Below are positions 5,958 through 10,096 of a stretch of 12,725 bases of DNA, piece after piece; position 1 is the stretch's first letter; the number at the start of each line of letters is the position of its first letter. Both the position numbers and the translations under genes were made by a program. A model generated the notes under the pieces. That model made no database searches. It was given only the letters and a program-made list of their open reading frames with translations, and was not told where the DNA came from. The DNA lies in IMG/VR virus record IMGVR_UViG_3300033159_000018, positions 1-12,725 of that record. One strand, given 5' to 3'.

Positions 5958-6104
5958 TTAACCGTACGTTGCTTGCAAATAAGCAAATAGACCCTCGCAT
6001 TCCTCTTCGGAATGCGAGGGCGAATTGAAAAGAAAATAATATGTATCTGGGGAATAGCCCCGTAAATTATAATTGTTTTGCAATAATTCCAAACAGTTCG
6101 TCAT
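5958..6104 (-). CDS. Small protein (48 aa), absent from the ORF track
   Basis: Strong SD GAGGTGA overlaps the upstream gene's TGA. Translates as MTNCLELLQNNYNLRGYSPDTYYFLFNSPSHSEEECEGLFAYLQATYG*. Confidence 0.65.
   Translation of the reverse strand: MTNCLELLQNNYNLRGYSPDTYYFLFNSPSHSEEECEGLFAYLQATYG
5992..6020. repeat. 12-bp perfect GC-rich hairpin
   Basis: CCCTCGCATTCC-TCTTC-GGAATGCGAGGG, inside the 48-aa ORF. Confidence 0.7.
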
Positions 6105-6116
6105 TTGGGGCTCACC

Positions 6117-6593
6117 TCAGTGTTGAACTACCCATTCATCTTCTACTACAATATTTTTAACCCTAATTAAACCCTTATAAGCGGACACGCGGTAGGGTTC
6201 TCCATTCTTGGCTGGAGGGAGTATGACTCCCTCCAGCTTGGATTTCTTCAGTAATTCCTCAGCTTCTTGCCTCGAATTTGTAGTTCCCAAGCTCTCCATA
6301 TAAAATAATAGAACAGATTTGTGTAATTGCAAAAGTTGTACCTGGAACGGCAATGGAATTACACCAACAATACAATCGTACTGTGTAGTAAGTTTCTTCA
6401 GTTCATCTATGTTATTTGGCAGTGTGTCTATTTTATTTATATTAATGCACACTGTTGCTAAATCCTCTTGTTGCATCCTCAAAAGTTCGTGCCTGGTTAC
6501 TAGCAAGCAGTTCTGAAATTTCATAGGTTGGGATTGACCTGAACTTGAAGCTTGACCTGGAGTAGAGGTGTATTGACTTTGAATCTGTGCCAT
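6117..6593 (-). CDS. Hypothetical protein (158 aa), candidate Csx16/Csx20-like ring nuclease fold
   Basis: The gene itself is well supported by its promoter and SD GTGGGG. The motifs LLVTRH and DCIVGVIPL resemble Csx16 (FVSRH...GDxVIGTLP). The functional call is by eye only. Confidence 0.55.
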   Translation of the reverse strand: MAQIQSQYTSTPGQASSSGQSQPMKFQNCLLVTRHELLRMQQEDLATVCININKIDTLPNNIDELKKLTTQYDCIVGVIPLPFQVQLLQLHKSVLLFYMESLGTTNSRQEAEELLKKSKLEGVILPPAKNGEPYRVSAYKGLIRVKNIVVEDEWVVQH

Positions 6594-6708: not shown

Positions 6709-6767
6709 AGAAAAGCGTCCAGCAGTGACAGCTGAACAAGTACGAAAGCCCGACCCTCACGGCAAAA

Positions 6768-6791
6768 TCCCTCAAACAGCTGTTTGAGGGA
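6768..6791. promoter_or_regulatory. Palindromic operator TCCCTCAAACAGCTGTTTGAGGGA
   Basis: 24-bp perfect palindrome. Confidence 0.8.
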
Positions 6792-6856
6792 GAACGTGTT
6801 TAAAAACACGGCTTATCTGAGCCAGAACTTGGGTGAGCCGAAATTATGAATTTAAA

Positions 6857-6881
6857 AAATTCTCCTAAAAGGGATCAAAAA
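6857..6881 (+). repeat. Degenerate inverted copy of the CRISPR-like repeat (anti-repeat), followed on the minus strand by a T6 tract (6859-6854)
   Basis: Plus-strand TCCTAAAAGGGATCAAAAA compares with the repeat TCCGTAAAAGGGATTGAAGG, in the opposite orientation to R1 and R2. Confidence 0.6.
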
Positions 6882-6913
6882 TGGAAGAATATACATTTGC
6901 TTCGTGCTGAATT

Positions 6914-7009
6914 CCTTCAATCCCTTTATGGATGCGATGGTGAAGGGGCATGTCTAAATTTAATTATGATGATACTTCCGTTTCCTTCAATCCCTTTTAC
7001 GGATGCCTC
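6914..7009 (-). CRISPR. Mini-CRISPR-like array (2 repeats, one 45-nt spacer), no cas genes in the window
   Basis: On the minus strand, R1 (7009-6984) is GAGGCATCCGTAAAAGGGATTGAAGG and R2 (6938-6914) is ATCGCATCCATAAAGGGATTGAAGG. Both resemble Sulfolobales 25-nt repeats (ATCCC-AAAA-GGGAT stem and ATTGAAAG 3' handle). The spacer is 6939-6983. Confidence 0.75.
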
Positions 7010-7030
7010 AAAGTTTATACTCAGCCGACT

Positions 7031-7046
7031 TTAATAAGTTTTTCTG
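7031..7046 (-). promoter_or_regulatory. BRE-TATA promoter for the mini-array
   Basis: Minus-strand CAGAAAAACTTATTAA. Normal archaeal spacing puts the TSS at about 7008-7010, the first base of repeat R1. Confidence 0.65.
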
Positions 7047-7113
7047 TACTCCATGGGAAGGCTCAGGATACAAAAAGAATGAGAAGTTGAGAAGTATTCT
7101 CCAAGAAATTCGT

Positions 7114-7695
7114 CTACCTCGGCTTTGCGAAAAAATCCAGGATACTGCTTTGCCTGCCGTGGGACTTACTTACCAGTTGCTGTATTTCTTTCAGTTTCCT
7201 CCTTATGTAATTGACGTCCTTTAACTGCTGAAATCTGCCGAGTAACATCAAAGTAACGTCTCCGTAGTCGAAAGAATAGAATAAGGCTTCTTTCAGCTCG
7301 TGCCTAGTAGAAATGCCAAGATACCAGTGCTGGTATTTAGACGCTTTAATGAAATCATGGATTGTATAGTCTCTGTACTTCGGATCAGACGCGTATCCTG
7401 CAATCACTTTATAGTTATTTTCCCTCAGCTTGTCGGCAATTTCTAGCTGGCTCAGGGTATGAATAGGGACAACGTAAGCTATGTTCTTTGGGACTGGAAG
7501 AACGTAATTAATATTGTCTGGGTATAACGCTACCTCTATCTTGTTTCTGTTAAACCAGAGTTCCCTCAAGTATTTCTTATAATTTCTCTCTATAAGCAAC
7601 GCCTTTTTGTTGTCAAAAAACCTGGGGTATATTATATAGCCAGTGACGTCTTGAAGCTTCTGAATTAGAGGGTTATAGCCTAATGCTAGAATCAT
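7114..7695 (-). CDS. Protein of about 193 aa with a C-terminal PIP box; possible divergent TGT/DpdA-like barrel
   Basis: The true start is likely the ATG at 7695 (SD GGGGG, TATA TTTAAATA at 7735-7728). The C-terminus QSSILDFF matches the PCNA-interaction consensus QxxIxxFF. Confidence 0.65.
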   Translation of the reverse strand: MILALGYNPLIQKLQDVTGYIIYPRFFDNKKALLIERNYKKYLRELWFNRNKIEVALYPDNINYVLPVPKNIAYVVPIHTLSQLEIADKLRENNYKVIAGYASDPKYRDYTIHDFIKASKYQHWYLGISTRHELKEALFYSFDYGDVTLMLLGRFQQLKDVNYIRRKLKEIQQLVSKSHGRQSSILDFFAKPR

Positions 7696-9772: not shown

Positions 9773-10096
9773 ATGAAAATAAAATTGAACCCCGAGATGA
9801 GTGTCGTAACCTTTAAGTTAGAGGAGGATCTACTCCAAAAACTCGATTTATATGCTATGAAGTCAGGGTTAACTAGAAGCGATGTGATTAGAGAAGCACT
9901 GGAATCCTATGATTGGGGGAATAAGAAGAAAATAATGCCAATTCGTATTCGTACGATAACAGTTAAACTGGAGGGGGAGTTATTGCAAAAGCTCGATTTA
10001 TACGCTGTGAATGCAAGGGTAACTAGAAGTCAGGTAATTAGAGAAGCTCTCAAACATTATCTATCCTCATTTGATGGTGAGGGCGGTGAGCAATGA
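9773..10096 (+). CDS. Tandem ribbon-helix-helix transcription factor, aCcr1/CdrS-like
   Basis: Two RHH units: [33 protein letters not shown] and [33 protein letters not shown]. The duplication is also visible at the DNA level. Confidence 0.88.

Follow-up and report, generated by a model that had tools for sequence, protein, structure and literature searches.

The 12,725-nt window analyzed here, which is the entire contig IMGVR_UViG_3300033159_000018 (present in the JGI metagenomes as Ga0326758_100290), appears to carry a mini-CRISPR array with one spacer and without cas genes of its own, borne by an archaeal virus similar to SMV1 and SMV3. We give this reading a probability of about 0.6. At least two direct repeats of host-like type, one spacer of normal length and a viral setting without nearby cas genes were all found. 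A spacer match to a related virus or mobile element did not appear in the collections searched, and this counts against the mini-array reading, given that targeting of a related virus is the defining behavior of the known mini-arrays. The locus is most useful for what its relatives reveal, namely the same place in the genome with a solitary repeat, with an array, and after loss of the spacer.

The virus and its intergenic array

About 31% of the window matches the Sulfolobus monocaudaviruses SMV1, SMV3, and SMV4 at a nucleotide identity of ~81%, and several of its proteins, those of the genes flanking the array among them, fall within archaeal-virus PHROG families. Judged from these matches and families, the window is part of an SMV-like (Bicaudaviridae-like) virus or of a closely allied Sulfolobales element. 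Its genes include one for an acyltransferase and one for a tandem ribbon-helix-helix protein, and no cas family was detected among the 17 ORFs scanned (12.7 kb of genome covered). The ribbon-helix-helix protein is 107 aa long with two tandem domains (9773–10096, plus strand), and the two halves of its gene form a 94-nt direct repeat with 77% identity (9807–9900 and 9957–10050). The window also contains 10 copies, vs. 0.08 expected, of the palindrome AAACAGCTGTTT, mostly inside CTCAAACAGCTGTTTGAG (12-mers at 903, 4464, 5431, 5913, 6694, 6774, 7789, 9661, 10777, and 11217). These copies are mostly intergenic, some tens of bases upstream of TATA-like boxes, and the palindrome is found too in SMV1, SMV3, and the related loci L083 and L094. 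Its role is probably that of an operator to which a viral DNA-binding protein attaches, or that of a signal for recombination or termination. One ENA contig (L079) follows the window at 99.75% identity for 5.6 kb, after which it runs on into unrelated sequence (L079 5624–6134) encoding a different 170-aa protein fragment, being either a rearranged variant or an assembly chimera.

The array is located in a 520-nt region separating two minus-strand genes, the upstream one coding for a 193-aa protein (7114–7695, phrog_17844) and the downstream one for a 158-aa protein (6117–6593, phrog_31280). Within this region, an intergenic island of ~390 nt (6722–7113) holds the whole unit together with one extra copy of the palindrome. 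On the minus strand, the unit consists of the leader-proximal repeat R2 (6984–7009, 26 nt, GAGGCATCCGTAAAAGGGATTGAAGG), a single 45-nt spacer (6939–6983), and the leader-distal repeat R1 (6914–6938, 25 nt), whose 22-nt core is GCATCCATAAAGGGATTGAAGG. The 22/23-nt cores of both repeats differ by one mismatch and one indel, R2 having one substitution and an extra A with respect to R1 and also to the solitary repeats of L083 and L092. They have the 12-mer GGATTGAAGGAA in common, which occurs twice in the window vs. 0.14 copies expected.

A BRE/TATA-like element (7030–7047, minus strand, ACAGAAAAACTTATTAAA) is found ~20 nt upstream of R2, a distance at which transcription would begin at or beside the first base of R2. 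We infer that this element is a promoter; it is nearly invariant across the four lineages that carry the unit and resembles the CAGAAAA-TTTATATA seen upstream of the neighboring 158-aa gene. The tail 3′ of R1 (6871–6913, minus strand) comprises 9–14 variable nucleotides and then a conserved block ending in T5, and this T5 run (plus 6877–6881, ~35 nt downstream of R1) is a putative archaeal oligo-T terminator. No RNA structure was indicated (fold z-score −0.18), Rfam gave nothing meaningful, and neither GenBank phages nor PLSDB plasmids yielded a homologue of the island, the palindrome excepted. The triplet that precedes the spacer within the array, as read from the sequence, is AGG and not CCN. 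As CCN is the PAM rule for type I, the array would be no self-target for a CCN-dependent type I system.

One genome per prokaryotic species (GTDB representatives) was scanned for three consecutive repeats containing the 12-mer TTCAATCCCTTT. Many unrelated arrays were retrieved and, within the Sulfolobales, only those of Candidatus Aramenus sulfurataquae, whose repeats equal the viral core at 19 of 22 positions and are the closest cellular ones. In the crRNA sense they read GATGCATCC-CG/CA-AAAGGGATTGAAAG, their spacers measure 38–45 nt (mean 40–41), the 45 nt of the viral spacer being at the top of that range, and the arrays adjoin cas6 and cas1/cas2. In the Ca. Aramenus MAG (L045 6678–7568), the array-adjacent cas1 is split into two ORFs of 132 and 146 aa, which reflects either a frameshift or an assembly error. 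No host with exactly the viral repeat was found among the species representatives scanned, and the viral leader showed no similarity to the Aramenus leaders and gave no alignment with them. Since 3 of the 22 core positions differ, including the handle (AAGG in the virus vs. AAAG in Ca. Aramenus), and R2 is not identical to R1, recognition of the viral repeats by a host Cas6 stays putative.

The Ca. Aramenus arrays also offer a guide to polarity. The two arrays have a leader in common, which sits on the GATGC side of the repeats, and the leader-distal end of the repeats is ATTGAAAG, the 8-nt handle; the reverse complements of R1 and R2 end in ATTGAAGG. By analogy, the viral array would be read on the minus strand from R2, with the ATTGAAGG ends as the counterpart of the ATTGAAAG handle. 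This repeat polarity, the BRE/TATA-like element, the downstream T-run and the minus-strand flanking genes all place the crRNA on the minus strand.

Related loci and the history of the array

The window strain with its identical array was recovered in six independent assemblies (two from JGI, two from ENA, and two from Logan) at 99.7–100% identity, so that the array is no assembly artifact. The samples with this strain or its relatives comprise JGI 3300033159, 3300033781, 3300006855, 3300045863, and 3300025462, ENA ERZ27247221 and ERZ27247208, and SRR10916955, SRR10917048, and SRR5682125. Among its relatives, SMV3 and contig L085 lack the whole ~390-nt island and have the flanking genes only 132–138 nt apart. 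Three further lineages (L083/L084, L092, and L094) have the island at the same place, with a single repeat and no spacer. The unit is always found just downstream of the homologue of the 193-aa gene, and of the four lineages carrying it only the window strain has a spacer. L083 is the closest relative, with a 193-aa protein 94% identical to that of the window.

L083/L084 and L092 have solitary repeats with exactly the core of R1, and L094 differs from it at three positions. Measured against the window, the block from the promoter-like element to the repeat has 86–92% identity in L083 and L092 vs. 71% in L094, and the T-run tail 86–96 vs. 77%. The sequence just upstream of this block is at 81% in L083, 56% in L092, and 46% in L094, and the 158-aa protein is only 55–73% identical across the unit-carrying lineages. 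The conservation of the block across lineages indicates that the conserved object is a small unit made of putative promoter, CRISPR-like repeat, and oligo-T. The 25–30 nt lying between the last repeat and the T-run (window 6871–6900) are themselves conserved at 77–96% in L083, L092, and L094. Cas6 cleavage of a solitary repeat would turn this tail into a guide-like RNA that bears an 8-nt handle; none of the related loci examined contained a sequence complementary to it.

Other genes come and go around the unit. An extra 194-aa gene (L092 9020–9604) is found in L092 between the solitary-repeat unit and the 158-aa homologue, which marks the island as an insertion hotspot. The family of the 193-aa protein (homologues P0004–P0007 and P0013) is present too in the conjugative plasmid pARN4 and in integrase-bearing elements integrated in the chromosomes of Acidianus manzaensis, Sulfurisphaera tokodaii, and Saccharolobus islandicus, a distribution over viruses, plasmid, and integrated elements that demonstrates gene flow between viruses of this kind and plasmids.

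Compared to the solitary forms, the window has 74 extra nucleotides. In L083, AAACGGAG comes after the solitary repeat and equals the first bases of the window spacer in the crRNA sense. The flank behind R1 of the window is another, variable one and is similar to that of L094. The simplest history starts from a solitary repeat as the ancestral state, such as seen in L094 and L092. One acquisition would have duplicated the repeat around a new spacer, giving the form found in the window, and in L083 a deletion of ~74 nt between the short homologies ACGGAAG and ACGAAG would have taken most of the spacer and R1, with the first 7–8 nt of the spacer as the remaining scar. The two changes of R2 would be later mutations. 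An alternative history, in which a longer stretch (the repeat and 9 nt of flank) was duplicated at spacer insertion, needs more extra changes than the deletion model.

The spacer and the search for its target

Read on the plus strand, the spacer consists of GGTGAAGGGGC, an ATG (6950–6952), and the codons TCT AAA TTT AAT TAT GAT GAT ACT TCC GTT, i.e., GGTGA, six bases, the start codon, and ten open codons that give MSKFNYDDTSV. The sequence-only reading had taken this for a Shine-Dalgarno sequence and a translation start, to which a minus-strand crRNA would be antisense, and the strand signals described above bear out that geometry, as a crRNA from the minus strand yields a guide that pairs with an mRNA carrying both elements. 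Its statement that the window holds no second copy of the spacer also stands, the best other match being 10 nt long; a 27-nt similarity of 74% between 2465–2491 and the spacer was attributed to chance. The leader-proximal 7–9 nt of the spacer (plus 6975–6983, the codons for TSV) recur beside the solitary repeat of L083, and under the longer-duplication history the true spacer would have 36–39 nt and the TSV codons would lie outside the protospacer. The part with GGTGA, ATG, and MSKFNYDD is spacer under either history.

How often such a motif arises by chance was estimated from strand-specific 45-mers of ~88 kb of SMV-like DNA, counting GGTGA-N3-9-ATG followed by at least eight open codons. It was found in 0.17% of the SMV-like 45-mers vs. 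0.055% in shuffles, so the motif is uncommon and about two thirds of its natural occurrences should be real starts. The protospacer may thus span a true Shine-Dalgarno-led gene start with odds of about 2:1. The window itself has seven GGTGA…ATG motifs, and genes truly begin at no fewer than three of them (461, 10093, and, for the conserved 48-codon gene, 6104). Two further frames are open throughout the 45-mer (plus frame 0, GEGACLNLIMMILPF; minus frame 1, NGSIIIIKFRHAPS), and we estimate that, in genomes as compact as these with genes of ~600 bp, a gene start would in any case fall within several per cent of the spacers acquired at random. Regarding the 48-codon ORF (5958–6104, minus strand), it is preceded by a GGTGA Shine-Dalgarno sequence, lies directly downstream of the 158-aa gene and has exactly 48 codons in L085, L086, L089, and L092 as well; this constant length makes it probably a real small gene.

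The sequence-only reading had pointed to the 45-mer and to proteins beginning with MSKFNYDD in Sulfolobales hosts and viruses as the way to a target; none was revealed in the collections searched. With the spacer, these were IMG/VR, the JGI metagenomes, GenBank phages, PLSDB plasmids, and ~25 related loci. The scans of IMG/VR and the JGI metagenomes required exact 20–25-mers or the MSKFNYDD codon pattern, and the N-terminus was sought in proteins of 25–80 aa. In IMG/VR, the exact spacer 25-mer and 20-mer retrieved only the contig itself and four unrelated contigs, rejected as chance matches of 21 nt (24–25 of 45 positions), and the codon-degenerate MSKFNYDDTS pattern retrieved only the contig itself. 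The MSKFNYDD pattern in the JGI metagenomes added to the contig three unrelated bacterial gene starts with different nucleotides. Blastn with the spacer against GenBank phages and PLSDB plasmids gave chance matches only (E ≥ 0.5). Across the ~25 related loci, with L083–L107 and three integrated elements (from Acidianus, Sulfurisphaera, and Saccharolobus genomes) among them, blastn-short and the 11-mer peptide matched at most 14 nt, the 14-nt match in L079 being inside an unrelated gene. In L043 and L045, the Aramenus loci adjacent to cas genes, and in the three integrated elements, all spacer matches stayed below 12 nt, and no protein of 25–80 aa shared the MSKFNYDDTSV N-terminus. Scans of IMG/VR for two repeats in succession, for the leader, and for the exact repeat likewise gave no further copies of the unit and recovered only the contig itself; other matches were discarded as unrelated bacterial arrays and tandem repeats. 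Since its target was found in none of these searches, the array is to be seen as a further example of a known viral weapon and provides no evidence for a new silencing mechanism.

Competing readings and known viral repeat units

As a mini-array, the unit would be transcribed on the minus strand from about 7007–7010 via the BRE/TATA-like element, host Cas6 would cut the repeats to leave an 8-nt AUUGAAGG handle, and the 45-nt guide would be loaded into host type I and/or type III effectors. This guide would be antisense to a probable (about 2:1) Shine-Dalgarno sequence and start in another mobile element or virus, and the carrier would exclude a competitor, as proposed for SPV1 and SPV2. A guide antisense to mRNA is usable by type III as well as by type I. 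The sequence-only reading went further and proposed silencing by type III cleavage or repression at a 5′ end; nothing in the data favors either over ordinary DNA interference, and to our knowledge the 5′ end of a transcript plays no particular part in any type III mechanism known. The 5′-end position is most simply an accident of where the protospacer came from, and the idea of silencing at a translation start would gain importance only through the discovery of a target. In Sulfolobales, crRNAs from one array serve type I and type III effectors alike (PMC6858448).

The main rival, which we regard as unlikely overall, is that the conserved unit acts mainly as an RNA anti-CRISPR of the solitary-repeat (Racr) type, an abundant small RNA resembling the repeat that ties up host Cas6 or backbone subunits, with the window spacer as a by-product of host adaptation machinery using the viral repeat as acceptor. 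Three of the four lineages do have a single repeat directly 3′ of the promoter-like element, with a T-run after it. Three lineages also agree exactly in the repeat core despite their diverged neighboring genes, and the viral repeat departs from the consensus of the host, a trait of many Racr candidates. Viruses, archaeal ones included, are known to carry solitary repeat units downstream of promoters (PMC10651486), and L083, L092, and L094 are like Racr in having one repeat 3′ of a promoter-like element in a virus without cas genes (Camara-Wilpert et al., 2023; PMC10651486). However, the solitary repeat is found only in L083/L084, L092, and L094, whereas the window has two repeats and a full-length spacer, which the window strain keeps unchanged in six samples. 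The characterized Racrs and the tested cases are so far bacterial, and a solitary repeat with its tail could also give a crRNA-like guide rather than a decoy.

Less likely than the anti-CRISPR rival, and improbable in our view, is that the array is a decaying relic, once functional or accidentally copied, that is no longer processed or used, in which case the Shine-Dalgarno sequence and ATG would be a coincidence. R1 and R2 differ from each other and from host repeats, the closest relative L083 has lost the spacer, no target was found in the collections searched, and two other frames are open in the spacer, all of which would suit decay. Yet across four lineages the promoter-like element, the repeat core, and the T-run have diverged less than the sequence around them, and the array is identical in six assemblies.

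A bolder reading, to which we assign an equally small chance, sees in promoter, solitary repeat, and terminator a small-RNA gene with which the virus hijacks the Cas proteins of its Sulfolobales host, serving as decoy or tail-guide in most strains and re-armed here against the ribosome binding site and start of a host-defense or rival-virus gene, which would be silenced by type III or by a CRISPRi-like block. If true, it would be an RNA-based counter-defense of an archaeal virus caught in its gain and loss states.

Slightly more doubtful still, and again behind the anti-CRISPR rival, is a regulatory role, with the guide as a crRNA-like RNA that steers a host effector to the ribosome binding site or start of a host defense or cas gene and represses it without cleavage. 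We know of no regulatory crRNA-like circuit in Sulfolobales, which counts against it, and neither Aramenus L043 and L045 nor the elements integrated in three Sulfolobales genomes gave a partial match. The resemblance of the spacer to a Shine-Dalgarno sequence plus start codon and the lack of a perfect target in the virus and plasmid collections searched both speak for such a guide, and for bacteria there are reports of viral crRNA-like RNAs by which Cas proteins are reprogrammed and immunity genes of the host silenced (bioRxiv 10.1101/2024.10.29.618823). Like Cracr (bioRxiv 10.1101/2024.10.29.618823) and host CreA-type guides, the locus has a mini-array borne by a mobile element, with a guide that could address a gene 5′ region; unlike them, it has no partially complementary host target in L043, L045, or the three integrated elements.

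Finally, there is hardly any chance that one of the plus-strand ORFs (6950–7090 or 6846–7034) is a real small gene and the "repeats" incidental: both begin with the GGTGA-spacer-ATG motif, but both run antisense through the conserved repeat and promoter, and the missing start codons or early stops in L083, L092, and L094 already contradict the idea. The 46-codon ORF at 6950–7090, which runs from the spacer ATG through R2 and the promoter, was named by the sequence-only reading as the feature that, if a conserved gene, would speak against an antisense guide. Its ATG is within the 74-nt insertion missing from L083, L092, and L094, and among the proteins of 25–80 aa in a collection of 5.8 billion proteins no homologue of the 46-aa product shared three 5-residue words with it, so it is no gene.

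The mini-array reading also fits what has been described in other viruses of archaea. Mini-arrays of 1–2 spacers are carried by SPV1 and SPV2 (Portogloboviridae) and a one-spacer array by the bicaudavirus ATV (Medvedeva et al., 2019; PMC6858448). As in these, the window has one spacer between host-like repeats, in an intergenic position, with a putative promoter upstream and no cas genes, and related strains differ at the locus, which indicates turnover; furthermore, the window virus belongs to the same broad group as ATV (Bicaudaviridae-like). Unlike them, it has no protospacer found in a related virus, its leader is unlike any host leader examined, and its repeats are of a different family, nearest to that of Ca. 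Aramenus. Nor does the array occupy the ATV position, since in ATV the homologue of the upstream gene (gp69) is followed directly by gp70. A further difference from SPV1, SPV2, and ATV is that relatives of the window show a solitary repeat with promoter as the neighboring evolutionary state.

Virus-borne mini-arrays are still known from few archaeal viruses, and whether stand-alone viral repeats accept spacers was left open by Medvedeva et al. (PMC6858448). Here, one syntenic repeat unit with a putative promoter is found in three states, solitary (L092 and L094), with one spacer (the window), and solitary with a scar (L083), which argues that viral repeats do gain and lose spacers in nature. 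Solitary repeat units, for which an RNA anti-CRISPR role has been discussed, and mini-arrays are also connected here as forms of a single evolving locus.
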